Positions 1,312 to 63,009 of a DNA stretch of 64,000 nt are shown one piece after another. A program made the translations under genes and the position numbers. The DNA is from Pelomyxa schiedti (lineage: Eukaryota; Protista; Evosea). The notes below the pieces were generated by a model, which had not been told where the DNA came from, did not search any database, and worked only from the letters and a program-made list of their open reading frames with translations. Location: NCBI GenBank assembly GCA_020536535.1, contig JAHLWZ010000004.1, positions 372,001 through 436,000 of the forward strand, given 5' to 3'. Within the stretch, counting starts at the first letter, position 1. Each line of letters begins with the position of its first letter.

Positions 1312-2880
1312 TTAGGACACTTCAACAATGGTAACATTTGTCCTGATTGTTGCGCGAGGGACAGCGGAGGAAACGACCTGTTGGAGAGAAAGTGAGTACT
1401 TGAGGGACAATCACTGAACCATCTAGTACCTCTCCGACAATCCAGGCAGGATAGCCATCTATTGCCTGTAACTCCGAGCACATGGCTTGCGCTGCTGCAA
1501 GCGACGGTAGGCAAACGAGAAGTCCTCCAGAGGTCTCTGCTGATACTCCAACAAGGAGCCCAAAGTCGTAGGCATCATTTACGCGAGCCATGCCAGCTAT
1601 CACAGGTAGCGTGTGGATTTCAATGGAACAGGGAGTGGTCTGCTCCTTAGCCTTCCATTTTGTTAGTTTTTAGTTGGTATGGAGGAGGAAGCACACGAGA
1701 TTTTGAGAATGGCCAAGTATGCCAAACCCTGTCACATCTGTTGCTGCATGAGCTCCTGAAATTCGTTAGATGCAGCAATTGGTGGTGTCCCTACCATATT
1801 TGTGCATTAGCTCTGCGCCTGTCTTATTCAATCTAGACATGTTGGCTGCAGCAAGATTGTAAGCTCGTGTCACCTCTTCGGGAGTGATGATCCCTTTGAT
1901 CTCGTCCCACATTCCAGGAGTATTTGGCTTCTGTGCACACATCCATTGATGTGCGTTAACTGCTAACTGCGTACCCAGAGGTTTTGTGAGAATAACGATG
2001 TCCCCAGCAACAGCATGTATTGGTCTATTATGAAGTCAGAGAGTCCCAATTCAAAAGAAGATACCGTATTATTCCACTATCTGGCTGAACGGACATTGCA
2101 ACACCACCAATGATGGGCCTTTTGTTGGTTGAAAGGTTATTTTGTGAGTATATGAGTTATATACCAGGGATTTCGGACGCTTTGTCCTCCAGTTACCATG
2201 GTCCCTGCCTTTCGAGCAAGGTCTTGAGAAAATCAATTCACTGGAAGAAGATAATATCGGGAAAACCTGTGAAACCCTTCATCATCTGTGTTGTAACTAT
2301 TCTTCGGTGAGCAGGAGAAGGAATTTCCTCGGAGGATGCAAGTAGCATTAACATAGTATCACATCGAGTAATGCCCATACTGTACAAGTCCGACAACACA
2401 TTGGCACACCCAATCATGCCCTGAAAGGAAAAGTTAGGTGCCCACCTCCAATTCCAGAAAAAAAATAGGGTATCAGACTTGAACATAGGGATCATCAATT
2501 ACAGGATAGAAAAACTGCAAGGAGGTCAAAGGGCTCAAAAAAAAAAAAAAAAAAAAAAAAGCTCAAACAACTCACATCGGTAGTTGAAACCAAAAAGGTC
2601 CCGGGGGTAAATGTCTCCACAACAGAGCAATCTGATATCAAGGCAGCCTCGCACGCGGAAGGGGTCGTCGTCTCACTCGTGAACACAGTTTCTTTGAGCA
2701 ACTGATGCAGTTCTGACTGGGGTATCTTACACCCTGTTCCCACGGTCATTCACCCGTCCCATAACGAATACGCGGGGAAAAAACAGCGAGCGAGTCACCT
2801 CATCCTTTAAGCCTCGTGTAGTCCGTCAACTTAAACGTATCCGGCAGCCCGTAGGCAGACGGCGGCTGAATCTGTGCCAT
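1312..2880 (-). CDS. SEPHS2: Selenophosphate synthetase 2 (selenoprotein; in-frame UGA = Sec at 2802-2800), multi-exon
   Basis: Exon 1 MAQIQPPSAYGLPDTFKLTDYTRLKG-TGA-G, intron 2798-2734, then GCKIPQ gives the LKGUGCK motif. Further SPS motifs: GCANVLSDLYSMG, VTGGQS, LTKPLGTQ, AATDVTGFGILGH, SAETSGGLL. C-terminus ...VVSSAVPRATIRTNVTIVEVS*. Confidence 0.95.
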
Positions 2881-32236: not shown

Positions 32237-33967
32237 ATGAGCAAGCAACGTAGCGACCACGACAGCGGAGATCCAGCCAACAGGGGGGTAATGGACACCA
32301 TTGGGGTGGCGTCGCCGTCATCGTCGGCTGCAAACGACGAGATCTCGATACTCATGCCTCCGGAGGAATCTACGCCCCTTAGCACGACATCGCCATCACC
32401 GTCGCCGTCAGTTTCCGGTGACCCTGAGTGCAGTTTTTGGGGAGCCGTCGCTTTGAGTCACAAGCATAGAAAGATGCTAATCAAACTGGAGAGAGGTTTG
32501 TTTAGTGCTTAGATTCTCTTTTTTTCTTCGTTACTGGCGATGTTACGCTAACGTAAAACTCTCCCAACTGCAGACTGGTTTGTTACGAGCTACATAAGCG
32601 ATTACATTTTAACGGCAGTAATCTTTATCATTGGCGGGTATGACTTTTTCTAGATTTTTTTTTTTTGTTTGTTTGTTTGTTTGTTTGTTTGTTTGTTTGT
32701 TTGTTTGTTTGTTTGTTTGTTTGTTTGTTTGTTTGTTTGTTTGTTTGTTTGTTTGTTTGTTTGTTTGTTTGTTTGTTTGTTTGNNNNNNNNNNNNNNNNN
32801 NNNNNNNNNNNNNNNNNNNNNNNNNNNNNNNNNNNNNNNNNNNNNNNNNNNNNNNNNNNNNNNNNNNNNNNNNNNNNNNNNNNGTTTGTTTGTTTGTTTG
32901 TTTGTTTGTTTGTTTGTTTGTTTGTTTGTTTGTTTGTTTGTTTGTTTGTTTGTTTGTTTGTTTGTTTGTTTGTTTGTTTGTTTGTTTGTTTGTTTGTTTG
33001 TTTGTTTGTTTGTTTGTTTGTTTGTTTGTTTGTTTGTTTGGGTAAACCATTCACATAGAATTATTGAGAAAGCTGTATCTCCTTACAACATGGAGATTCC
33101 TGGTGGGGCCGACAACTACAATTTGCAGTACACCTATATGAAGGAAAGTGTCCCCACATGGCTGCTTTGCATTCTTGCTTTTGTGTACGCAAAAAATACT
33201 TCCAGTGTGGAATCTTATGCCTTGGTAGCGTCCCGACATTGGCTGTGATATGTATTAATTTAGCTCTGTACGCCCTCCGCTGCCGAAGGTCCGGATATAC
33301 TGCGTTCGCACATGACACTCACAACTTCATCCTTGGAATTGTGGAGTTTTTTGCTCTGGCTATTTTATTTGCATCAATAGGGAAGGTTCGAGGTCTCCTC
33401 TTGTTCCTCATTGTAATCACTTGCACAGGTTGTAGCTGGCAGATACAGGTAACTCCTCGAAACGCATCCTCCTCCAACATCTTTCAGCTTTATTTATATC
33501 CCTAAGACCCAATTACTTTAACATGCCCGATGATGTGCGTGAATCACAAGGCAGGAAGAGCTTCCCTAGTGGTCACTCCACAATCGCATTTGGAGGATTC
33601 ACCTTCTTGAGCCTCTATCTTGCAGGCAAACTGAAGTATGAAACCCATAGGTAGCACTCTCTTAAGTTGCAAACAGAGCTTTTGTAGACACGTCGGGTCA
33701 ACTCTGGAAACTCATCTTGGTTCTTCTACCTGAGATTCCAGCCCTCTTAATAGCTCTGAGGTAAAGCAATAAGCATTTGTAATCTCATAGTTACGCAGCC
33801 GGACCCGTGATTACTACCATGACTTCTCAGACATTGTTGCCGGTGCCGGTCTAGGGATCGCTATAGCCTTTGTCTGCTACAACTCACTCTACTACCCTCT
33901 CAACCACCCCAATTGCAATGAACCAAAGAGGAGGACCCCTATAGTATCTCTCCCTCTACGGAGATAG
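32237..33967 (+). CDS. PAP2-family lipid phosphate phosphatase (LPP/DPP1-like), multi-exon
   Basis: Catalytic motifs K..AGRYRPNY, SFPSGHS and [12 protein letters not shown], with hydrophobic TM segments. Stop TAG at 33965-33967. Confidence 0.9.
32664..33040. repeat. (TTTG)n microsatellite in an intron, containing a 100-N assembly gap (32784-32883)
   Basis: Directly visible. It explains the spurious FVCL/QTNK ORFs. Confidence 0.98.
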
Positions 33968-44772: not shown

Positions 44773-45553
44773 TCAGAGAAGGATGCAGCATCCTCCCTCT
44801 TTCTTGTTATCTTTGGAAAATCGTCTCATCGTTCGGACAACCGTCTGAAAGCTGGCCTCAATGTTGACGCTCAGTTTGGCGGATGTCTGTTTGTACATTA
44901 AGAACATACATATGAACAAAGCTTTTCATACCTCAAGATAAGGGGATTCTCCACAGGTCTTTGCCAAGGATTTCCCTTCTTCTTCAGTAACTACTCGAGT
45001 TGTCGGATCCATGTCTATTTTGTTCCCGCAAAACACCACGGGAACTTTTGTAGCCTCCTTCAGAATGAGGATCCTCTGGTACATTTCCTGCGCAATCTGA
45101 AATGTAAGCCGATCCACGACGCTCCACACCACAAGGAACCCTTGCCCTTGTCTAAAATATGCCTCCCTCTAAAGAAGTGTTAGTAAGACAGTACACTCCC
45201 TCAAGTAGTACAGTATAAATTTCATCACATATTTATATTTCTTCACGAAGCTCTCAGGTGTGGTTGGTTGTACATAATTCGTAATAACTTATCAATACAT
45301 GAAAGAAAGTGAAAAAAGAACCCACAATTGCGGCATAGTCGTCCTGACCAGCGGTGTCCAGAATCTCGAGCATGCACACTGTGTCGTCGACGCTGATTGG
45401 TTTCCGATAAGCAGTTTCGAGAGTGGGGTCGTAGTCCGTCACGAATACGTTCTGTACGAGGGCCAGCGTCATCGCGCTCTTGCCGACGCCACCCGCTCCC
45501 ACAAGTACAACTCTGAAGCTATCCCCTGTCCCGGTTGTCTTGGTCTTTCCCAT
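44773..45553 (-). CDS. Ras-family small GTPase
   Basis: GAGGVGKS, YDPTLE, DTAGQ, NKID, ETSAK, CaaX CILL*. Confidence 0.93.
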
Positions 45554-48147: not shown

Positions 48148-49271
48148 ATGGCATCAGATCAGTATGCGCATTCGCAAAACAACCAAGTGAAGTGGCGAGA
48201 TGGGCGGAATGAATAGCGACAATTAACGTGCGCTTACTTTGCAGCGATTATTTCTTCAAGATCCTGCTCATTGGCGATTCGGGTGTAGGCAAAAGTTGCT
48301 TGTTGATCAGATTTGCGGTAGGTCATCTATTGGGGTTTGGGGTCTTCTTCCCAGGCTCAGTCCGTTATTTATAGGATGACGCGTGGACCGACACGCATAT
48401 TGCTACAATTGGTGTTGATTTTGTATGCTTTCTCCGTGCATATTTCTCTCTCAAAATGCACAGAAAATAAAAACACTGAACTGTGATGGAAAAGTAATCA
48501 AGCTCCAAATTGTATGCAGTTAAGTTTTGCAGCCACTCTTCTTAACCTGTTTTTCTTCCCCTGTGCTAGTGGGACACTGCAGGCCAAGAGAGGTAAATTA
48601 CCCAACAAAAAACAAAATTCCACATCTCAATTCCTTTAGATTCCGAACCATTACTAGTGAGCATCCCTTTTTTCCCCCAATTTCTGTAAACACAATTTTG
48701 TTTTCAGGCTCTTATTACCGTGGTGCGCAAGGAATTATCTTGGTGTTTGATTGCACAGGTTTGTCTCACATATTTATGTTTCTGGGTGACAGTTATGGCA
48801 GACATGGAGACTTACACCAATGTCAAGCAATGGCTTGGTGAGATAGAACGGTACGCCTGTGAGAATGTCAATAAAGTACTGCTCCCACCTTGTTGTCTAA
48901 TTACGTTAACACTTATTAGCTTCTTGTGGGTAATAAAACGGATCTTGTTGACCAGCGAGTTGTACAGACAAGTCTTGCAAAGGTTTGTTAGTACCAAACC
49001 TTTTTGGTTTGCTCTTAAATAAGGAAGGAATTTGCTGAGAGTATGGATATTCCATACATAGAGGCCTCCGCAAAAGCAAATATTAATGTGGAGGAGACTT
49101 TCATGAAAATGGCCAGAGCAATAAAAGACAGGTCTTTACCCACTTTCAATACCAAGCCGATGTTAATATCTACTTAGACTGTCAAATTCTACAGTTGAAG
49201 CCACACCGGCACCAAAACCTTTGAAACCTGCAAAACCACTGGGTAGTGGCGGTTTCAAATGTTCTATTTGA
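48148..49271 (+). CDS. RAB1: Rab1-like GTPase (divergent paralog), about 11 exons
   Basis: [74 protein letters not shown]. Ends GGFKCSI*. Confidence 0.93.
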
Positions 49272-49417: not shown

Positions 49418-50387
49418 TCATGGATACCAGTCCAAATCAACTCCTGTGTTGCACAATGTGGTTGTTCCTTGGTATTGTTTGATGCTTGGCTACAAACGTT
49501 GTGATTCAAAGTGGAATATCTGCAAGTAAGATAAAACACATACACTAGTCCAGCCTCCAAAAGCTACAAAGTCACTAAAACTTGGATTGTCGTCATAGTG
49601 AGCGTACCACAGGCCATAACCCGCTCCGCCAGTGTATGAACTAATTTAGGATAAGGGATGTAGGGAAGAGGGGAAAAAAAAAAGGTCAACCTCCCCATAA
49701 TAAGGGTCCACATATTTTTGTTTGTATACACTCCAATGGTCACACCCTGACCCTTGGCCGCACCAACAAGAGAGGTGAAGAACTGCTGGTTTTCTTGACG
49801 TTGGTTAATGCCTAGTACAATTACCACGGTAAAGTACCTGTCAGGCTTGTGCTCCAATACTGTCCGAGAACTCCATTTGGCTCCTCAACATCCAGCCATA
49901 GCATTCCATATTCAACACCATTTGAAGTAAGATTTCCAATAGCTTGTTGCATTTGTGTCCTAACATTTATCATGAGAGCCAATCTTAAAAAAAAAAAAAA
50001 ACTCACGAGGCAGTCGACGACGTGCAACTTGGGTGGTTACCACCATAGCATGGGAAGAAATATACATCAAAGTGCTTCATTCCTGCATTGCTGTTTAGTT
50101 TCTTCCAGGTGTATTTGCCATCCATCCACAAAAAACCCCAAAACGGGTGATGACTACGAACCGGCATTCCACGAAGATGTAGACGACTCCACACACGCCG
50201 AGTCAAACGAGCCCGAGGACTTCCAGCACCTCGCGATGGCGTACGACTTGGACGACGACACCATGCACGACGCCGCGTCGGGCGTGATCGTTGTGCTGAC
50301 GTCGACGCCGTTGGTGGCCCGCGCCACCCCGGACATCGCAGAAATTGCCACCACCGCCCATAATAGCACAGTGCGTAGTCCGTGCAT
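49418..50387 (-). CDS. Secreted GH25-like lysozyme (Entamoeba/Dictyostelium/nematode LYS type)
   Basis: Signal peptide, then GVDVS, DVYFFPC, MLWLDVE, IGVYTN..W, LWYAHYD..PSFSDF..FGGW and QY.GTT..C..GVDLDWY. Confidence 0.9.
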
Positions 50388-50557: not shown

Positions 50558-53500
50558 ATGCCATCACGAATAAAGCCGCAACAACCGCGGCTGGTGAAGC
50601 GTATACAACATGTCGCTGGTGGTGCTTTGAGATCTCACCTTGTTGGATTGTCGCACTCATCGGTGGACGCTGTTGTAAAGTCTTACGTGGTGCCTTCGTC
50701 GCCACCGGAAGAGCAGCTGGAAAAAGTGGTTTTGGATCCACCTAAACTCGAATCCCCTGTGAGTGTGATGCCGGCTTTGATTGATGTGGCGAATGCAACT
50801 TTGCCAGGAGCCTCTTTACCGCCTGTTGACATAGGAAGAGATGAGTTTACTTCCGACGACACACACGGAACATGGGCACATAGAGTGGCGAAGGTGACAT
50901 TTTATTCTTTTTTCAAAAAGAAAACATGGGTCACTAACGTGAGAGAACTTTTTAACCTTAACAAGGTCTATGACCCCTCTTCTATGGAAAAGCTACCCTA
51001 TTTCCCAGAGGCATATTTTGTTGCCAGGCGAGACGTTCTTTCCCGGTCTTATGTGCAGAGGTCATCTATTATCGTAATTGAACTTCATATTGGAGGTTTC
51101 TACGTAAGACAAATACATGCTCTTACCTACACTCTTAGTTGATGCCTTGAGTAAGTATTACTTTCGGGTTCTAGTTATTCGTGGTTCCAGAGAGAAAATT
51201 GATACTGGAAATGCCACCAAGGGAATAATGTACGCGAGCACACTTAGTGATGCACAAGCCATCTATGGGTCTCTTGTGCGAGAGAAGGTCGTAATTAATG
51301 ATACAAATACAATCTTAAAGAAAATAGACCTCAAACATGAACAAGTATAAAAAGATCATTTTGTCATTTGCAAATATGGGAACAAGCACAAGTACCCTTT
51401 CTCTCATTGAAGAAATTACCTTACACATGCTGCTAAGTTACACCAGTTTCTGCTTTATCAAAAGACGTTCGAGATCTTCTCCTTCATTTATACAAGGAGT
51501 GTGCTCTACAGCTTTCTAATAAACAAATCAACTTCGATAAAGTTTCTCCTCCTCAAATTGAAAAAGCCCTTGTTGTTCTATACAAAATGCGAGAAGTATG
51601 ATATCACACTGGATGCCAGTCATTTTTTTAAAACAAAAAATAAGGAGCTGAAATCCAATGATGTCATAGAGGCTACAAAAGCGTCTGCCCTTTCTTCCGA
51701 ATTTTTTTCTCTTGTTCCAGTTGGGCAATCTAGGCAAAAAGTTTTTCCACTCCTTCTACTCCACTTTTACACTGTTTCTAGTTGATTAGCACAATGGAAC
51801 AAGTCTTGGAGTGGCTAGATTTATTACAGTCGATGAAAGATCTTACAAATCTTGGAGAGGCCTCCTTTGATATGAGTGGAAATTTAAATGATGTTGACAT
51901 GCTGTCTGCAGCACTAATTTCCCATTTTATATGACTCTAAACAAAATGAAGATACTACTCTTTAGGTTGCGATATTGACCTGGTCAGTCCGTCGTCATCA
52001 GAATATGCAAATATTGTTGAGATTATAGGTCAACGCAGGCAGCGTAACGGAGGAGGGCCTCTTACAATAGGAAAGATCTTCAAAGCACATAGACATATGG
52101 ATTTATCATCATTTACTAATGGAATATCCAATCATCAATTGTTATTCCATGGAACTGCAATAGGTCTCACTTTCACTCTCTTCTCGTCCACTCACTTAAA
52201 GCAAGGGAATTGGCTTGGTATATTGTCAAGAGGCATGCTTCTGCCCCAAGTGGTCGTTAAGCTAGGAGTTAAACGTACCAATGCTGGAAATATGGGGGCT
52301 GGCCTTTACTTCGCCGATGATCCTATGACAGCCTTGAAGTATTCCGCTACTGGTGCCATGGGTGCTATGGGTACTAAGTATGTTTGCATTCTTTCAACCT
52401 TTGTTTAACCCATTCTAAGATACCTATTGCTATCCAATGTAGCTCTTGGAACAGTTAAAGATTTGTATAAATTTGACTCGAGCCTTAGCTCACCACCCCC
52501 TGGATTTGATAGTTGTCACGGCGTAAAAAGAACAGCAACATCACCAAGTGATTTTGATGATGATGAGTAATATCTCCCAAAGCTTGACATCTCAAGAGCT
52601 GACCTTCCAATAGATTTATTATTTACAATACATCGCAACAACACGTGCAATACTTGATTGAAGTTGACAGCCCCGGTGTGACAACAATCTCAAGCACTCC
52701 TCTCTTGTCCCCTCCAAAAAAGCCTAGACCAATTGGGCAACTATCAACATCTATTCCAGAAGCTCTCCCCGACCTTCCTCCAGTAACAATATCCTAGTAC
52801 CTCACATACAACTCATGTCTTTCCATGTTTTCCCAGTCAAATGAAAAGGCTGGTCTTATGTCTAGCTCAGGGACTCCCGTACCTTTGGAGGCCGTAAGCA
52901 TTCACGCAAAACTCATTGGTACCTTGGCAGCAAAATTCTCATTATTTATCTTTCCGGATAGATCTTGTGGCGGAAGTGGTGATGTTACAAGAATTCAACA
53001 ATGTTGGGGATGAACCCATAGAAGCTAAATATGTTTTCCCGCTTGACGAAAAATCTGCTGTTGTTGGCTTCGAGGCATTTATCAATCGTACTTTACAAAG
53101 AAAAGAACCCTACTAACTGTGAATAGACAAACACATTGTTGGTGTTGTTAAGGAGAAGGAACAGGCACATAAGGAGTACAAGGCAGCTATAGAACGAGGT
53201 GATGGTGCCTATCTCCTGGATGAAGCTAAGTCAAGTGTTTTTACTGTATCTGTTGGAAATCTACCTCCAAAAACCAAAGTGGTGATCAAAATTTCATGTA
53301 AGCACCTCATCTCTAAGCCGCACACGTAATTACTTGACATTGTCAGATATTACGGAACTTGCTATTGAAGGAAATGCACGTAAATTTGTTTGTCCAATGA
53401 ATCTTGTTGGTCAACAAAAGCACAGTGCCCTAGCACAAGTTTCTCAATCTACCACAAAAACTGTAAATACAGTACAACCTCAGGTGAAAATAATTCATCT

Positions 53501-56500
53501 ATCTTCTTTTTTTAAGTACATTAGGGTACGTTCTATATGGAGATTTCCATTAATATGCCCCACGTCATTCACGCTATTGAGAGCCCCTCCCACTCCATTC
53601 GTTACAAATCAACACCAAAGAAAGCAACACTGTTCTGGCTTGATCCCAGTTTGCTTTTTTTTTTTTAAATCAAATCGAACTAACATTCATGCAGATCCCC
53701 CCACAACCGATTTCATTCTTCTTGTCCGGCTGTGTGATGTCCGTACTCCGTTCATGTGGGTAGAACGAACACCCACAGATATATCCGTTCCTGAAGTGGA
53801 GGAACATGTAGCTATGGTTGCATTGTACCCTTCTCTTTCCGAAAATCTTCTATCCAACTCAGAGTGTTCGTCTTACCTCCCATCTTTTTGTGCTGATATT
53901 TTAATAAAGACACCCTTCTTATTGATCAATCTGCCAGTATGATTCCTTCTCTCTCAGTGTGCAAACAAGTGGCCCATCACCTTGGTATGAACTACTGTGC
54001 TTCCTACGAAATATATTCATAAAACAAGTCCGAGGAATTCCGCTGATGGCTTCTTTTAATATTATAACATTTGGCTCTGTGTTTGAACCACTGTTCCTTT
54101 CGCCAATTTTAAAAACTACCAGTTCTGCTGATCAAAGTGCTCTCTCACATATTTCTGTACTTCACAAAAAGTACTATTCATAGTGATAACATCATCAGAA
54201 ACTCCAAGGTGACTGGGGAGCCAGTATTCTTTGGCCAGCGCTAAAATCCACACTCTTACAAATCGAAATCAGAGACAAGATGCCAAAATCCAGCACTGAT
54301 TCATTGATTTCCAATCTTTTCATTATTACCGATGGTGATTTTTCTCATGATTCCCAAGTTTTCGATGTGTGTTTAAAAAACCAAACATTAACTTAACACC
54401 AACACTTCAAGCTCATCCGTGATCACTGCCAAAGGCCTGGAAATAAGACACGTATATTTTCTTTTGGGATTGGGACAGAAGTACATAGGCACAACATTTT
54501 CACACTTGCCCGCCTTGGAGGTGGCGCTGCCGAATTTGTTGCCTCCAATAACCCACTTCGACGGCAGGTTCTAAATCTTCATTCAATAGTAAAAACGTGC
54601 TAATCTGTATCCTCAAATAGGTGTCAAGGCAACTGGAGCGGGCACAACAACCTTGCTTAAAAGATATTTCTGTAGAGTGGGGTGCACGTCATAGTGTTGC
54701 AGGTCCTGTGAAGCAAGCGCCACATAAGCTCATGTCCCTATTCAGTGGAGAACGCGTAATCATTTTTGCTTTTATTCCTCAAGATTGCCACCAGGTATGT
54801 GCATCAGTGTCTTGCACAAAACCTGAAGGAATGAAAGGTTACCCTCCAAGCAGGCAGAAGTGATTCAGAAGAGAAATTTCAAATAACTGTGACGTCCAAC
54901 CTTGCTGAAACTGTTACGGGGCTAATGTTGCATAGACTTTGTGCTCGATCTGTGGTGAGGTATAAAACAAGCACCTCAACTATTTTCCTCATTAAATGAA
55001 GAGACTGGGAAGATCAGTGCATCGCAGAGGACAGTGTATCAAGTGAGCTGGCAAGAGTTCAAGTGAGATCTTTTGAAGGCATATCTCTTTCTAAGAAATG
55101 TGTAGAGAAAAGGGGAGATAATAGAATTGGGAATTCGGTACTCTCTTGCCACCACCTTAACCTCCTTTATCGCTGTAGAGGTACTTCCTTTCACGTTTCC
55201 TTTTCTATTTTAAGTTCCAGTAGGAAAGAAGTGAAGAAGAGAAAAAAGGGTATCTTTTACAATACTGCACTAAATTGAAATAAAAGTATCACAGTTTAGT
55301 GAAATTAAAACCCACACCTCCGATAACTGAGCTGGCAAAGAGCGAAAAAGTTGACGAACTTCCGTTTTGTACAAATTGGAAGGAGGCAAAGAAAGAATTG
55401 TTTCAGTTAAACAGCATTCCTTTTAGGTACTCCTCGCTTCATATTAGTCAGTCATCTTCTAATTTACCTGAAAAAGTGAGAGGAAGAACTATGGAAGGGC
55501 GTACCACTCTACTGTGTATGATTTTTGGGCTCGGGCACCAGCAGAGACGCCTTTACCACCCTTAAACACAAATAATCCCTGTAACTGCAAAATTTAACCA
55601 CAAGTAGTATATTAATAGCTTTTCCCTATGATAGATTGGACCCTAACATTCCCTGAGCAAGTTCCTGTGCGGCACGATCTCTTTGGCTTCATGCAGGATC
55701 AAAATGTCTCAGTAGAACTATTGTGTAAAAAGAAAAGCAGAATGCCAGGCATCCTAGCTCGCCGCAAGAGGGAAACGTTCTCCAATGCACTTTTCTGTGA
55801 AGATTCAGAGCTTAGTATAGCGCCCTGTTGTTCTAGTTCATCATCCAGGGGACTTATGTATTCCCCACTATCTCCCCCATGCATGGAGGCGGAGGAGGAT
55901 TCCTTTTGTGCAGAAGAAGAAATGTACGCACCTCCCATGCGACTCGCTTCACCAGCAGCGTCAGCCGCCGCCGCACCACCACCACCACCACCACAAGCAG
56001 CAGCAGCACCATCTAAGGCTCTGCCACCCCCAACTACTACGCCGTCGCCTCCTTCTGCAAAACCCCAAAGCGCCAAGGCAGCAGCACCGCGGGCACAAGA
56101 GGACAAGAGGAAGGCCGATAGAAGAGCACGGTGTGAAGAAGAGGTGGAGAATGTAAAGAAGGTAATGAGGGAAAATATTGAGCACGTGTTGGAACGAGGA
56201 GAGAGGATTGAGTGCCTTCAAGACAAGTCAGCTGATTTGGCATACGCTGGTGCAAGGTTCAAATCACTGTCCTCTCAGAGGTTACCCCAATTTTTGTAGG
56301 CACGTTGTCTAACTGAATAAAGGTATTGCTGTTCGGCCCCTTCGTATGCGCCGATTTCACTGGCCTGCGATTCTTCTTATTCTAGGAAAAAAGCTGGCTG
56401 TTTTATAGCCACTGCTGCATTTGGTACTCCGATGGATACCAGGATAAATGTTTTGCGTTGCTTCAGGTTCGTTGCCCCAAGCAGGAGAACGAACACTCCT

Positions 56501-56789
56501 CACCCTTTGTAGAGACACAACTCTGCACAGCCATTGGCTAGGGCGGTCCTTCACTGCCCTTTATTATACACTTTCCCCGCCAGTTGCCACGTGGCTGACA
56601 AAGCACCCTCTAGCCTGCGCACTCACCAGGACGGCTTTCCTTGTACCAGTAGTCCTGTTACTTGAACACTGTGGATACTCCAAATGTACGGATGTGGATC
56701 ACAACAAAGCCGCCAAGCAGACACTCCTCTGGGCTTTGGCGATTTTGTTGGTGCCCTTCCTTCTCATCCTCTCCGTACTCGTTCTGTGA
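50558..56789 (+). CDS. PARP4-like poly(ADP-ribose) polymerase: PARP catalytic + VIT + vWA + R-SNARE motif + CFI-box-CTERM + C-terminal TM, multi-exon
   Basis: PARP: LLFHGT..N.LGILSRG.LLP, GAGLYFAD...ALKYS, VALG, SCHGV, DDE|FIIY (H-Y-E triad). VIT: PVPLEAVSIHAKL, EAKYVFPLDEKSAVVGFEA, FTVSVGNLPP. vWA: LIDQSASM, FNIITFGS, IFIITDG, IFSFGIG. PARP4-specific TSFIAVE...PPITELAKSEKVDELPF. An in-phase splice path continues to the stop at 56789. Confidence 0.9.
56135..56280 (+). other. Synaptobrevin/VAMP-type R-SNARE coiled-coil motif inside the PARP4-like CDS
   Basis: EEEVENVKKVMRENIEHVLERGERIECLQDKSADLAYAGARFK, with the zero-layer Arg in LERGE. Confidence 0.88.
56396..56660 (+). other. CFI-box-CTERM-type domain split by a 46-nt intron (56467-56512)
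   Basis: Spliced: GCFIATAAFGTPMDTRINVLRCFR|DTTLHSHWLGRSFTALYYTLSPPVATWLTKHPLACALTRTAFLVPVV. Confidence 0.85.
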
Positions 56790-56906: not shown

Positions 56907-59900
56907 ATGAGCAGCGCCGGGACAACGGGCAGCAGCAAGACACACACAACCACTAAAAAACCACAAGCACTCAAGTCGAAGACACGCAGAAAGAGTGGTG
57001 GGCGTGTGGCGAGCGTAAAACGGAATGCAAAGACCAGAAAGGGCGCATCGAAGAAAATGCTGTCAGGCAAGTCCAAAGCGCGGTCGAAACGAACAGCGTT
57101 GAAGAGCGCCCCGGTTCCTCTCGTGGGGAAAGCTGCACTTCAAAAGCGTTTGGATGAGGTGTGCACCACGGTCTTCTTGCCATTCAATAAGTAAATGTAA
57201 CTGTTCTATTTAAGCTCTTGGAGCCTTTCACCCGCAAAAACCGTAAAAGCCGCTCTGCTGACTGGCCGACAGCTTCCAAGGAAGTTGTAAAACTTCTGGA
57301 TACCTACAAAACTCCTCAAGGTGGCAATGTCAACGAAAAAAACCAAAAATAACCCTACAACAAGCACTTGAAAAAACCGTTGATATGATTATCAAGCAAA
57401 TGGCCACTCAGAGTACAGTCCTTGTTGGTCTCTCTACTTTACTGCAGGAGGTCGAACTCACTCTCTCCTATTTTCCCTCACTTTTGACCTAAGGTTATGA
57501 AAAGATTCCCTCAAATCACACTGACATCTCTGATTACCCGAATGGATTCCCATTTTCCTCTCAAAGCTCCTGCAAAGGTACACAAGCTCCCTTTGGGAGG
57601 AAAAACCCAATTTGGGTTATTTTTTCTGATTTTACTGACTTTCATAAAAGGAAGAAGGCTCTGACACCTGCATACAATATTCAAATGCATTGTCTTCCCT
57701 TCTCACTGCGTCACTTCCTGTTGTGAGTGAACCTGAAAAAGTGACTGTCTGTATGCAGTTGTTACGAAAACTCGTTCCAAGGTGGGTTTCAGGGGAGCCT
57801 TTTGGGCGAATATCAATGAACTTGATCCAGAAGGTAGCCAAAACAGTAATGCGTGTGTGTGACATGTTGCAGATACCAGAAGCAGACCTACGTACAATAA
57901 TTGCGGAACTTGTTCCCTTATTAGTCGTTTCCCAACAATGGTCTATTTATAACCTCCACTTGATGTTAACTCTTGAGCCTTCCTTCAAGGTTATTGTTTA
58001 TGTAATTCAATGTCTTTCGTAATAGGATATATTAGGCTGAAGTGCTCAAGTTAAATCCTAGAATTAAATTTATACAAATCAGTGCCCCAGTTGTACCAAG
58101 GCTTCTTTCTTTCTTAAAGGTTGGAAACAAAATGATGATAAATGCTTAACAAAAAACTTAGACAAAAGTTGGACTTGAAGCAATAGGCAATCCTCACCTG
58201 TGGCAGGCAGTTGTGCGCAGTGCAACTCGGCAAAAAAATTCTCTTGATGTTTTGCACCTTCTCTGGAAAACGTTTGTTGAAGGCATTCTCTAAGAGTTTG
58301 TTCTGGACACTTATGCGAGTCACAGAAAAGCCATTCATCAATGAAAATCGTATCACTCAGGTGCGTCTGACCTTGTCAGCAGCCGTTTTTTGTTGCTGTT
58401 CTCGAGAAATCCTTATCAAATTCCTTGCTGACGGAAAAGTGAAGCTGATCTGTTCCCTTCTTGGGATGCGTGGTTTGCCCCTAAAGTATTCTTGGTCATG
58501 GGTATGCGCTCGAACATACCCCACAATCATCAACACATCAAAAAGTCCCATCAAATGAAAGCATCTCCTGATGCATGTTGCTTATTTCTCCAAAATTTTT
58601 TGGGATTTGCCCTCAAACCAGAGGGGTATGTTGACCATATGGTTGTTAATCTAATTCAGCTATTTCTAGGGGTACTTCCCTCCCGAATGCATTATGTGTG
58701 AAGGAGCTACTTAAACAGACTCCTAATCAATTTGTTAAGGATTATGTTACTAGTTTAATGAGAACTGTTCTCAGTTCCAGGTGAGTGGCGTGAAAAGTAT
58801 TTTCTTTCTCAAATAGTTTACAGAGATAAGAGCCTCACATCCTGGCTCCTTGTTCTTATTGTATCAGGAATAAAAATTCTTGTAAAAAGAGCTTGTATTG
58901 ATGAAGACTCGTTATCGTCATACTTGGTTTCCTTTTTTTCCGTGGCACATATTCAGAAACCACTACGTTGTGTTCTACACTTCTCCCTCATACACTCACA
59001 CTTTTTAGCCTCAATTTTGTCTCGGTTATCTGGCAAAGCTGAGTGGCTATTTTCTCATAGTGTTACCGAAACTGCCGCCTTTGGTAGTACTTTAACGGAT
59101 CTAATAAGCATGCTTGTCAAGTGCAAGCCTCTTACAGAAGGTACAACCCAAATGCAAATGAGAGTGGCTCTCAATCTTCACCGTAGGGCAGGTGATGTGG
59201 AAAGCTGGCATAAACACACTTTACAACTTCATACTGAAATGCAGTTGTATGTCACTCTCCCGGTTGAAGAGGTGGTTACTCACAACTTTTTCTAGTGAAC
59301 AAAGACATTTGGGCTCATGTTCACCTAAAGGAGCGAAGCAAAACCCAATTATGTGAATTGCTTTCTTCTCTCACTGGTCTGTGGACTGAGGTGGATTATT
59401 CCATTGCACTTTGGATGGTTCTAAGAAATTAACAGGCGGAAAATACCACAAATGGTGTCGTTCCAGCGCACTTAGGCTCACTTTTTCTTTTGTGCAAGTC
59501 TCTAATAGTTTATACCTTCAGTAATAGTGCCGCACTAGAACCTCTTCAGGTTGAGATTACCTCTTTACACACCTGAACCAAAAGATCCTCGACAGTCAAC
59601 TCTAATAACTCATTTTCAGAAACTAATAGATTCACTAAGCCGCCTACAACCGTTGTTATGTAAAGCAGCACTTCCCAAACTTCACACTTATAGTCCTGGT
59701 ATGTAAGTAAGTTACCTCAGACCATTGTACCCAAATATTCCTAGAAGAAAACGAGAGCTTTTCTTCTTTAACAACGGCTTTCTTACATATACTGAAACTG
59801 AAAAAACCGTGGATCTTGACTCCATCTTTTAAAAGTTTTGAGTAATTGCCCCCCTTTTCTTGAAGCTTTCTGATCAGTACATCCAGATCAATTTCTCCCT

Positions 59901-61871
59901 TTATCCCCACATCTAGCGCGGTGTCCCTTATAAATTTTGTTACTGGCGTTGGTGGGTATATTGTTACATAGCTCCTTGTTTACTCTACCAATAGAAACTG
60001 AGGATGCCGACCGATTAAGAAGTGATAGTGATAGTGATGACGATACAGATTTTGGAAGTGACCTGGAAGGGGAGAGTGGCAGCGAGGAAGCAGATAATGA
60101 GGAAATGAGCTTCAACGATTATCGAGCTGTTTGTTTCCCCCCTCTTATGTTTCTCTAATCGACCACAGGCTGCAGATGTAGAATTTGATGATGACACAAT
60201 GTTGGGGCTTGATAAATATTACTCTTCTGTTGTTAAAGGGGGTAAGCCAGAAGGCGAAGAGGACCAACTTGCAGTGGATGAGGGTACACCTCCCAACACT
60301 CGTTTTGTACTCACTTTTTTATTACCTTAGAATGGGAAAGACGCAGAGCCACAAAATACTTAGATTTTCTTCTTCCAGCTAACATGACAAACCCAATGCT
60401 CCTCCAATTGGCGTCCGATTTGGGTGACATGGCCCTACAAAGTCAGAAGATGGAAAAAAGTTCCTTGAAGATACTCCATAATATCTCCAATTTACTCCTT
60501 GGATTCACGCAGTACGCTATTTAAATGACCACAGTCGTCATTAACTGTAGTAAAAGGTTCCCTGTTCTTGAGGACAAAGAAATGGTGACGGCTGTCAAAG
60601 AGGCAGTTGTGGGATTAACGAAGGCATGTTTACGGGTAGCAAGAGACAACCTCTCCACTCCTGTCCTGGTCACATTTCAGTTTGCCAGCTACATTTCACG
60701 TGTGGTGATGCATTCGGTAAAAAAAGGGGGAGCTGCTGAACCGTTGCTGTCACCTGAAGAAGTGACTGATCTGGAGGAAAAGCTGGCTCAGCCTATTTTT
60801 TCCTATCTATCAAGAGAGCCCAGCAGCTTTGCCCTTTTAAAGACAGTAATCCTCGCGTCGGACATGGGGAGAACCCTCCTAGAACTTTGCTCACGTGAAC
60901 TTTTTGCTGACAAAGAAGCTGACACTCCAAGGTTTTTTTCCTTTAGTTAGTTCCACTACCTCAACCACATATTCAGCACTCACTTTAAAACACTGGATCT
61001 CTTATGCAAATTACTGGCCACACAAACAGTTTGTATCCAACCTCATTTAATCGCCTTTTGATTTGAATTTTAGTGTACCAATGCACTTAGTTTGGTGTCT
61101 GAAGCAGGTATAATTTCTCTTTGAATGCCGACCAATAAGCTGTTTGCAGCCGCCTATGTGCTTGCTTACTGTAAACGTCTTAAACGCAATGATGTGACAC
61201 CTGTTGTGGCTACTCAAATATTTCACTTACTGAAGTGCTTTCACGCACTTCTTTCAACTTCGTTGGAAACACACTCAAGGGAAAAGGTTCAATATCCTTT
61301 ACCAGTTTACCACGGCATTGCATTTTTTGTGTTGCATACCATAAAAACACTCTTCTAATTTCTATGTTAGGTCGTTGAACTCCTCCCAGAAAACTTGTTA
61401 TCTGAACTACAAACTGTCAGTAAGAAAATTGCCAAACAAAAAATTGTTCAGATGTGCCGGGTTCTGACCGAGCTCATAACTGGGTACTTACCCTTACAGG
61501 TGACATTAACTTGACTATCTCCTAGAGAAAAACAGCAGAAGACTGAGAAAGTGCGTAGTAAGAAGCCAAAAGACGGGGGTAGTGGAAAGGAAGCTCCCAA
61601 CAAAAAGAAACAAGCTCCCACCAAAACTACCAACTCTGCAGAACCTACAACAACAACTACAACAACAACAACAACAACAACAACTACGAGTACCACAGCC
61701 GGATCCAAACGACCACCCCCATCACCAACAGCAAACACCACAAAGTCGTCCCCCAAAAAGGCCGACCTGACAGTTAAATCAGCCAAAAAAGCCACCAAGC
61801 CATCACCACCAAAGCCCAAACGGACAAAGACCACAACTCAAGCAAACAACAAAGTAAATAAGAAAGTTTAA
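56907..61871 (+). CDS. Large helical nucleolar protein, MYBBP1A/Pol5-like, multi-exon
   Basis: Basic N- and C-terminal tails. ALEKTVDMIIKQ...GLSTLLQE..FPQITLTSLI resembles the Pol5/MYBBP1A N-terminus. An acidic tract followed by DDDTMLGLDKY and RATKYLDFLLPANMTNPMLLQL parallels DEAMMALDQS...RVLDLVEVLVTKQPENALVLEL. Exons are not fully resolved. Confidence 0.55.
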
Positions 61872-61998: not shown

Positions 61999-62835
61999 TT
62001 ACAACAAGGCACATTTGCCCTTCTTCCTGCCACCACCGCCTCCTGTTGCATTCCTGGCATTGTGTACTATGTCAATTGCACTCTCAAACAACTCATTTAC
62101 ACCCTGCCTCAGTCTCGCACAGGCCTCGGCGTAATTCACAGCACCACAGCTCCTTCCCAACTCCGCACCTTGTTCTGTTGATATTGTTTCTACTTTTCCT
62201 GACAACTGGTCGGCAACGGGGTTTTCACGTAAGTCAGTCTTGAGACCAACAAGTATAACCGGGATGTCTAGGTGCCAGGGTAAGGGGGAAAAAAAAGAGT
62301 ATTACGGCTTGGATGTACCAGGGCAGTAATGGCGGACTTCGGGAAACCATCTATCCTAGCATAATGTGATTCTCCAGAATGTGATGGAAAGGGGATTACC
62401 TTGACATTGTCATACGATCTTTTGCTAACAACACTAAAGCATATGAGAGCAATCTGGGTGTCGGGATATCTACCATTGAGAGTATCAAAAAAGAAGCGCT
62501 ATTAGATTTGATTTGTTGATGGAGTGGGTGACTAACGATAAAGGACGGAGTCGATCAAAGTCTTCCTGCCCTGCAGTATCCCACAATTCAAGACATATTG
62601 GGGCCGACTGAAGTCCAGTTAAAAATACATTCCTATCACAGAGGGGATACGCACGTTTGGTTTATTCACCACTTTCACGTAGTTCTCAAAGACCTTGATC
62701 TCGGTTACTGGCTACGTAGTGAGAAAAAGCAACTACACACAGTGGGGCAATACTTCTCAGGGAACTCATCACGAGCATAGACGATCAACAAGCAAGTCTG
62801 GGAGAAAAAAAAAGGGTGGTGTGAGGAAAAATGAC

Positions 62836-62914
<79 letters not shown>

Positions 62915-63009
62915 AAAAATGAAGGGAGTGAGAGCGTAGATCTTAGTTGGACCTTGCCGACAGCACCATCACCGACAACGACCAGTTTGATCCTCTCCTC
63001 TGTAGCCAT
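61999..63009 (-). CDS. Rho-family GTPase
   Basis: KLVVVGDGAVGKTCLL, YCPT|VFENY, LWDTAGQEDFDRLRPLSYP, WFPEVRHYCP, GLKTDLR, CaaX CALL*. Confidence 0.95.
62838..62912. repeat. 75-nt poly(A) tract (poly-T in intron 1 of the Rho gene)
   Basis: Directly visible. Confidence 0.95.

Follow-up and report, generated by a model that had tools for sequence, protein, structure and literature searches.

A PARP4-type gene of Pelomyxa schiedti with an R-SNARE motif and a prokaryote-derived CFI-box, a putative membrane tail, in place of a detectable vault-docking domain

The stretch of Pelomyxa schiedti DNA analysed here (the window, 64,000 nucleotides (nt); contig JAHLWZ010000004.1 of assembly GCA_020536535.1, positions 372,001 to 436,000) contains a deposited coding sequence, KAH3768093.1, that spans exactly 50558-56789 on the plus strand. 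Its product, denoted here as P0001, has 1617 amino acids (aa) and is named "protein mono-ADP-ribosyltransferase PARP4" in GenBank. The protein mapped onto the window base for base, with spliced coordinates matching the locus, as 31 exons and 30 GT-AG introns of 39-72 nt each. This exact mapping replaced two de novo models of the locus (a fewest-introns path and a codon-usage Viterbi path), both of which were poor. A preliminary description of the interval, made from the sequence without database searches, had read it as one gene comprising a PARP4 core, a Pro/Ala-rich linker, an R-SNARE motif, a Cys-rich spacer (RYCC), a CFI-box and a terminal hydrophobic helix. Every listed element is present, the range given for it coincides with the deposited coding sequence, and the order is borne out by the deposited model and its paralogues. 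Domain searches were performed on stop-free pieces of the DNA and then on the spliced protein, where the PARP, VIT, vWA, Synaptobrevin and CFI-box-CTERM profiles proposed for checking were all matched. The stop-free pieces had given PARP (E = 2.3e-10), VIT (5e-9 and 5e-18), Synaptobrevin (3.5e-12) and a CFI-box split in two, its halves abutting in the profile across an intron. In an exhaustive HMMER search, P0001 was the sole protein with 100% identity to the SNARE exon, which occupies residues 1264-1478.

Upstream of the tail, the gene encodes a PARP4 core, and this and all other features of the gene lie on the plus strand. A PARP regulatory (helical) domain (PARP_reg, aa 250-334, 51506-51850; Pfam PF02877, 4e-9) precedes the PARP catalytic (ADP-ribosyltransferase, ART) domain (aa 367-547, 51995-52668; PF00644, 9.5e-26). 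When aligned with PARP4 from primates, sponge and amoebozoans, the protein shows no variation at the catalytic residues H418, Y457 and E529, in agreement with the earlier statement that the H-Y-E triad is intact. Next come a VIT domain matching the full profile, positions 1-111 (aa 602-712, 52885-53348; PF08487, 2e-34), and a vWA domain (VWA_3, aa 858-1021, 53915-54537; PF13768, 2.5e-11), whose metal ion-dependent adhesion site (MIDAS) reads DQSAS at aa 861, so that the DxSxS motif is likewise intact. These two domains, the ITIH-like region, directly follow the ART domain, as PARP4 clade 5 requires. Human PARP4 was the only PDB match of the catalytic exon (1.9e-15), and the top database relatives of P0001 were all PARP4 or PARP4-like. 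By its domains, P0001 is an ADP-ribosyltransferase of the PARP4 clade (PARP clade 5), with predicted enzyme activity. P. schiedti has three further PARP4-like genes, P0069, P0070 and P0071, on other contigs. The exon that closes the ITIH-like region (55106-55180, ending ...TSFIAVE) is invariant in the four paralogues. It should be noted that this segment had been taken as PARP4-specific, which it is not, because bacterial VIT-vWA proteins carry TSFIAIEE.

Downstream of the core, the deposited model has a 26-nt micro-exon (ERSEEEKK-, 55224-55249), with equivalent 26-nt exons in P0070 and P0069, and the conserved linker exons 27 and 28 (55295-55580; KPTPP...VDELPFCTNWKE...HSTVYDFW...NNP) with intron 27 (55427-55476) between them. 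The PFCTNWK and D.W motifs of these two exons are invariant across the four paralogues. Intron 28 (55581-55634; phase 1, 54 nt, GTAAC...AG/ATTGG) is the disputed junction. Of the two junction introns proposed initially, intron 28 was placed exactly, the other was placed at 55417-55466 and needed correction, and the micro-exon has to be added. Exon 29, with an open frame at 55619-56296, begins with a W-T-L-T motif, a variable linker and a Pro/Ala-rich region (aa 1263-1411, 55635-56080) and continues into the R-SNARE motif (aa 1412-1477, 56081-56278), whose zero-layer Arg1450 is encoded at 56195-56197. The Cys-rich spacer of the deposited model (RYCC...LAC...KKAG, aa 1478-1503, 56279-56398) contains intron 29 (56281-56322). 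The CFI-box (aa 1504-1569, 56399-56642), interrupted by intron 30 (56467-56512), matched NCBIfam NF041770 over positions 1-66 of 69 with 78.3 bits against a cutoff of 40. The terminal hydrophobic helix (aa 1592-1617) and the stop codon occupy 56709-56789.

Comparison of the paralogues strongly suggests that P0001 is a single gene from the PARP4 core through the tail. Intron 28 is common to all four genes, on four contigs, with the same position, phase and acceptor context (AG/ATTGG; the slash marks the splice site), and a P/xW-x-L-T motif straddles it in all four, including P0071, which has a different (GTPase) tail. In P0070, intron 28 is 45 nt long, in frame and free of stops, so that the PARP4-side exon and W-E-L-T share one open frame, and the W-T-L-T of P0001 is continuous with its SNARE exon. 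The P0001 intron-27 site lies inside one single exon in P0070. The linker, CFI-box and transmembrane (TM) helix of P0070 form one 956-nt exon, which confirms P0001 junctions 29 and 30. A misassembly in this interval, named in the preliminary description as a finding that would overturn its reading, or a multiple displacement amplification (MDA) chimera at the junction was rejected, since the arrangement recurs on three other contigs and no gap lies nearby. The intron 28 equivalents of the paralogues lie at L002:7451-7495, L003:8144-8184 and L004:8087-8127. If intron 28 were retained, P0001 and P0071 would meet a stop only a few codons on and yield a soluble form without the tail, and P0070 would stay in frame.

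The core of P0001 follows animal PARP4 (vPARP) in the order of helical domain, ART domain with H-Y-E, VIT, vWA and long disordered linker. Unlike animal PARP4, it has no sequence-detectable BRCT, WGR or MVP-interacting domain, and carries a SNARE motif and a putative membrane anchor instead of vault docking (PMC10450202; bioRxiv 10.64898/2026.05.01.722283). The absence of a visible BRCT had been noted before, and no BRCT was matched by Pfam in aa 1-250 of any of the four paralogues even at E = 10. Upstream of the P0001 ATG there is room for only 170 nt before a gene on the opposite strand. The precomputed Pfam list of the Acanthamoeba PARP4 member likewise lacks BRCT. WGR was not detected by Pfam, and a search of aa 1-365 against PDB sequences also gave no match. 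By eye only, aa 140-205 (window 51047-51287; ...IIVIELHIG / YYFRVLVIRGSREK...SDAQAIYGSLVREK) look like a diverged WGR, which would fit the WGR domain predicted in human PARP4 (PMC10450202). Human PARP4 attaches to the wall of the vault through its C-terminal domain (PMC10450202; bioRxiv 10.64898/2026.05.01.722283). No similarity to this domain (MVPID/MINT) was found when the P0001 tail was compared by BLASTP with the primate PARP4 C-terminus (best E 0.25), nor with the C-terminal domain of Acanthamoeba (best E 0.86), consistent with the earlier view that the vault-binding tail has been replaced. PF26156 and PF26166, which are listed for vertebrate PARP4, were not among the Pfam matches of P0001, and the literature searched contained nothing relevant on MVP in Archamoebae.

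The end of the tail is of prokaryotic origin. The CFI-box has the signature CFIATAA[YF]G and shares 14 invariant columns with 61 prokaryotic modules, and a prokaryotic genome scan found relatives at >590 loci, mostly of anaerobic-sediment lineages, with 45-54% identity over 70-80 residues. In prokaryotes the module is C-terminal and occurs in a short form of ~80 aa and a long form of 100-112 aa that closes with a TM helix and, after it, a basic cluster. Counted from the Cys, the Pelomyxa tail has 114 aa and corresponds to the long form minus the basic cluster, so the terminal helix, the tail anchor of the preliminary description, belongs to the CFI-box module and is not a separate addition. 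In contrast to the prokaryotic long form, the Pelomyxa copies lack the basic cluster past the TM helix (P0001 ends ...SVLVL) and contain introns. The N-termini also differ: prokaryotic CFI-box-CTERM (NF041770) proteins carry secreted-type N-termini such as subtilases, papain-like proteases, GDSL lipases and fn3, whereas P0001 carries the PARP4 core. Mid-sized CFI-box relatives in prokaryotes and metagenomes are secreted-type enzymes. The CFI modules of the three Pelomyxa genes that have them form one clade (97/95) among bacterial sequences; spliceosomal introns interrupt the module in two of these genes, whereas the third has none. This indicates one acquisition followed by duplication and rules out contamination. 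Their nearest branch in the tree was Bdellovibrionota/Myxococcota (94/87), with 79 columns, too few to name the donor. Nothing relevant on CFI-box or CFIATAA was found in the literature searched.

The closest CFI-box outside Pelomyxa was in P0189 (L085:2244-3191, JGI metagenome 3300031885), with 73% identity over the first half. Its contig of 18 kb is phage-like, and among its tightly packed small genes are an integrase of phage type and an IS605 OrfB/Cas12f-like gene; phage-like or mobile elements are thus further carriers of CFI-box modules.

AlphaFold2 with 64 aligned sequences, the structure prediction suggested earlier, gave a confident SNARE helix at 1413-1464 (predicted local distance difference test, pLDDT, 81-96), a disordered Cys-rich spacer (~1457-1501, pLDDT <50) and an all-helical CFI-box bundle (pLDDT 81-93) followed by the terminal helix. 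Foldseek found no counterpart of the tail model in the PDB (best E 5.3). The terminal helix is the strongest hydrophobic segment of the protein (Kyte-Doolittle 19-residue mean 2.9), and a weaker window (1558-1577, 1.95) lies inside the CFI helical bundle. Hydropathy indicated no signal peptide, with a maximum of 0.92 in the first 60 aa. Since there is no signal peptide and the sole strong hydrophobic helix is C-terminal, insertion of the tail-anchored type is expected. The hydropathy profile agrees with the features of tail-anchored proteins, namely no signal peptide and a single strong TM helix <=~30 residues from the C-terminus.

The R-SNARE motif itself is well supported. On the spliced protein, Pfam Synaptobrevin matched aa 1424-1475 with E = 3e-11 (8e-13 in a further Pfam run), and an R-SNARE profile made from 67 proteins, P0001 not among them, gave the motif a score of 76.8 bits. 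Layers -5 to +6 are canonical and VAMP-type (V V M N V R I L S L G F), and those at -7 (R), -6 (C), +7 (S) and +8 (R) are non-canonical. Like synaptobrevin/VAMP, P0001 has a Pro/Ala-rich region ahead of the motif. Unlike VAMPs, it has no juxtamembrane basic/aromatic linker, its TM helix is not next to the motif, and it is ~10x larger. The R-SNARE profile match ends ahead of the juxtamembrane region, and the motif is separated from the TM helix by ~115 residues, made up of ~40 disordered residues, the 66-residue CFI-box and a loop. P0001 thus lacks the arrangement of a fusogenic SNARE, in which all 16 layers are intact and only a short linker leads to the C-terminal TM. It is established from SNARE mechanics that fusion by SNAREs needs a short stiff linker. 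The partly disordered gap of ~115 residues, together with the non-canonical layers +7/+8, implies that pairing with Q-SNAREs would be possible and that fusion could not be driven. Judged from these features, which argue against a fusogenic SNARE, a putative non-fusogenic address or regulatory role is likelier than fusion. A similar arrangement is seen in tomosyn and amisyn, in which a large non-SNARE N-terminal part is followed by a C-terminal R-SNARE motif that is uncoupled from a TM and forms non-fusogenic Q-SNARE complexes. However, tomosyn and amisyn are soluble, have WD40 or PH N-termini and possess neither an enzyme nor a membrane anchor.

The four Pelomyxa PARP4-like genes form one clade (100/100), within which P0001 is sister to P0069. 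The C-termini of P0069 and P0070 have the same CFI-box, helix and terminal TM as P0001. No significant SNARE motif was found in P0069, P0070 or P0071, where Pfam gave a single SNARE match, 13 residues long with E = 0.097, and the R-SNARE profile gave none, so that among the four paralogues only P0001 has the motif. The membrane-anchoring SNARE module proposed in the preliminary description thus separates into two traits, a CFI-box/TM tail common to three paralogues and a SNARE motif specific to P0001. The end of P0071 (L004:3001-9920, contig JAHLWZ010000184.1) is a Ras/Rab-like domain (Pfam Ras, 5e-44) with its motifs in the order G3, G4, G5, G1, the P-loop GGTNVGKS lying in the last exon, after SAK. 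Circular permutation, a partial tandem or an error in the gene model could account for this order. The protein further includes a WH2 motif, and its residues 1227-1262 form a Cys-rich hydrophobic patch.

Taken together, we favour, with a probability of roughly 0.6, the reading that this is one PARP4-type gene in which vault docking was swapped for an R-SNARE and CFI-box membrane tail, acting as a non-fusogenic address or regulator. A PARP4-clade enzyme would have lost its N-terminal BRCT and its C-terminal vault-docking domain. The replacement tail would consist of a ~240-residue disordered linker, the R-SNARE motif, the Cys-rich spacer and the whole of a CFI-box-CTERM module of prokaryotic origin, with the final helix of the module as the membrane anchor. 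Such an anchor would leave ~1590 residues, the enzyme and SNARE motif included, in the cytosol. The three CFI-anchored paralogues and the fourth with a Cys-rich hydrophobic patch and a Rab-like piece suggest that the family may place PARP4-type enzyme or scaffold modules on endomembranes instead of vaults. There, the SNARE motif of P0001 may act as an address or regulatory brake, tomosyn-like, pairing with Q-SNAREs and passing no zippering force to the membrane. The preliminary description went further and proposed that the enzyme could modify or titrate SNARE complexes at endomembranes or phagosomes. A known tail-anchored PARP is PARP16, an ADP-ribosyltransferase held at endomembranes by a C-terminal TM with its enzyme in the cytosol (PMC4245714). 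PARP16 differs from P0001 in that it belongs to clade 6, is small, has no VIT, vWA or SNARE motif, and is anchored by an ordinary TM rather than a CFI-box module.

Several points weigh against this reading. The P0001 gene model, built with Augustus and refined by PASA/EVM with single-cell RNA-seq (PMC8887013), is a prediction, all four paralogue models are the output of one pipeline, and the source genome came from whole-genome-amplified single cells. Protein collections held no transcript-derived fragments across the junction; the P0001 cluster has one member from one contig, and an exhaustive representative search returned P0001 alone at high identity. The same domain order was sought in other species, as the preliminary description had proposed, and protein and metagenome searches found no orthologue with the P0001 tail, so that its conservation is seen within one genome only. 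When metagenomes were scanned with an alignment of the paralogue tails, the only matches were VIT-vWA proteins of bacteria and a single short exon of eukaryotic origin, and the tail was absent from all of them. The sister paralogue P0069 lacks the SNARE motif, and the motif would thus be unneeded for the basic role of the family. In addition, prokaryotic CFI-boxes sit on secreted enzymes and are presumably extracellular, so that a cytosolic CFI-box would mean a change of compartment.

PARP4-like proteins with foreign tails are known from other lineages. Perina et al. 2014 describe appended 14-3-3, actin and ubiquitin domains and an amoebozoan expansion (PMC4245714), and our searches reproduced matches to 14-3-3 (1e-27) and ubiquitin (1e-26). 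The tail pieces of amoebozoan and invertebrate members are often partial and include the first ~60 actin residues, a ribosomal P-stalk C-terminal peptide and WH2. In the PARP4-like isoform X2 of the sponge Dysidea avara (P0082), aa 1356-1708 contain a full ubiquitin (1e-27), the first ~60 actin residues (2e-11) and a complete 16-layer R-SNARE motif (61.8 bits) with no TM. P0082 is an independent second case of a PARP4 with an R-SNARE motif. These proteins share with P0001 a PARP4 core with lineage-specific foreign tail modules (PMC4245714); unlike P0001, they end in a soluble helical domain and have no CFI-box and no TM. As a further observation, 14-3-3 domains (E as low as 8e-28) occur in the tails of P0072, P0073 and P0143 (Balamuthia, Acanthamoeba, Cavenderia), where the final ~40 positions of the family of 60S acidic ribosomal (P-stalk) proteins are also matched, e.g., by Cavenderia ...GAMGFGLFD. 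The accessible text of PMC4245714, which reports the 14-3-3 appendage, makes no mention of the P-stalk peptide.

Such tails raise an unlikely alternative, in which PARP4-like proteins would act as sensors that carry pieces of host proteins frequently targeted by pathogen effectors, and the SNARE motif and the Rab-like piece would be baits rather than working parts of trafficking. In its favour are the strong and often partial matches to 14-3-3, ubiquitin, actin, the P-stalk peptide and WH2, and the sponge tail, which unites ubiquitin, an actin piece and a full R-SNARE motif with no TM. The Rab-like domain of P0071, with no P-loop at its normal place, and the rapid evolution of PARP4 in primates within the disordered linker (PMC10450202) point the same way. 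However, this idea is based on pattern, partial domains may be gene-model errors, and a membrane anchor would be superfluous for a bait. Perina et al. instead interpret these appended domains as connecting the proteins functionally with signalling and with the cytoskeleton (PMC4245714).

A broader and more doubtful version would see the PARP4 clade as an old guard-enzyme family whose variable tails display host pieces attacked by intracellular microbes, among them a SNARE motif, a Rab-like GTPase, ubiquitin, the actin N-terminus, 14-3-3 and the ribosomal P-stalk peptide. Pelomyxa is packed with prokaryotic endosymbionts. There, the CFI-box anchor might have moved the family from vaults to endomembranes, and P0001 might monitor or regulate symbiont- or phagosome-associated SNARE traffic via ADP-ribosylation.

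It is improbable that the SNARE motif is a relic, i.e., a functionless leftover of the exon that brought the tail, decaying as in the paralogues. Indeed, no SNARE motif was detected at the corresponding position in P0069 or P0070, and in P0001 the outermost layers already depart from the canonical pattern. However, 12 canonical layers in a row and 77 bits against an independent profile are unlike decay on a branch with 0.4 substitutions per site.

More improbable still is a merger of two neighbours in the annotation, a soluble PARP4-like gene ending at TAA 55595 and a SNARE/CFI-box membrane protein starting from ATG 55628. With intron 28 retained, the upstream frame does stop at 55595 and an in-frame ATG follows at 55628. 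Genes are tightly packed here, the next ATG lying 117 nt past the stop of P0001, and the deposited model is a prediction. Moreover, the tail from its Pro/Ala-rich N-terminus to the SNARE motif resembles a brevin-type R-SNARE. However, only ~30 nt would part the two genes. The ATG at 55628, inside P0001 intron 28, is the only candidate start for a separate gene and is absent from all three paralogues. W-x-L-T after the intron is conserved even with the GTPase tail and stands in one open frame with the PARP4-side exon in P0070. A word-indexed protein search of the collection also found no relatives of the SNARE exon with 124-395 aa. Least probable of all is a working v-SNARE, with VAMP-like fusion and the PARP4 module as an N-terminal extension like the VAMP7 longin domain, for which the VAMP-type layers, the Arg at layer 0 and the C-terminal TM would speak, but against which stand the profile match that stops short of the juxtamembrane region, the Ser and Arg at +7/+8 and the long gap to the TM with its 40 residues of predicted disorder.

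The preliminary description knew of no described protein with this architecture. P0001 was already public in GenBank, with a precomputed Synaptobrevin match, and the sponge model also has an R-SNARE motif; mosaic PARP4-like tails and membrane-anchored PARPs are already known. The P0001 tail is not described in the literature searched, including searches for PARP4 with synaptobrevin. What PARP4 and the vault do has yet to be settled (PMC13100048; bioRxiv 10.64898/2026.05.01.722283). On the favoured reading, the Pelomyxa family would be a natural experiment: within one genome, the PARP4 enzyme/ITIH-like unit would have been freed from vault docking and rewired to membranes in four different ways, one of them with a SNARE motif, which suggests what the conserved PARP4 core can do alone. 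The family also provides a clear case of a prokaryotic C-terminal sorting/anchor module captured by a eukaryote, followed by intron gain and spread by duplication. The general impact is moderate, since the family is lineage-specific, the amoeba is not a model organism and the models are predicted only.

The P0001 gene has close neighbours on both sides. A minus-strand gene for 231 aa (49418-50387), with no Pfam match, lies 170 nt from its ATG. The downstream gene (56907-61871, plus strand) starts 117 nt past its stop and encodes 1223 aa with a Lys/Ser/Thr-rich N-terminus and no Pfam match. The sole gap of the window, a run of 100 N (scaffold gap) at 32784-32883, is far from the gene. Within <=12 kb there are three small-GTPase genes (44773-45553, minus; 48148-49271, plus; 61999-63009, minus), two of the Arf family and one of the Ras/Roc family.

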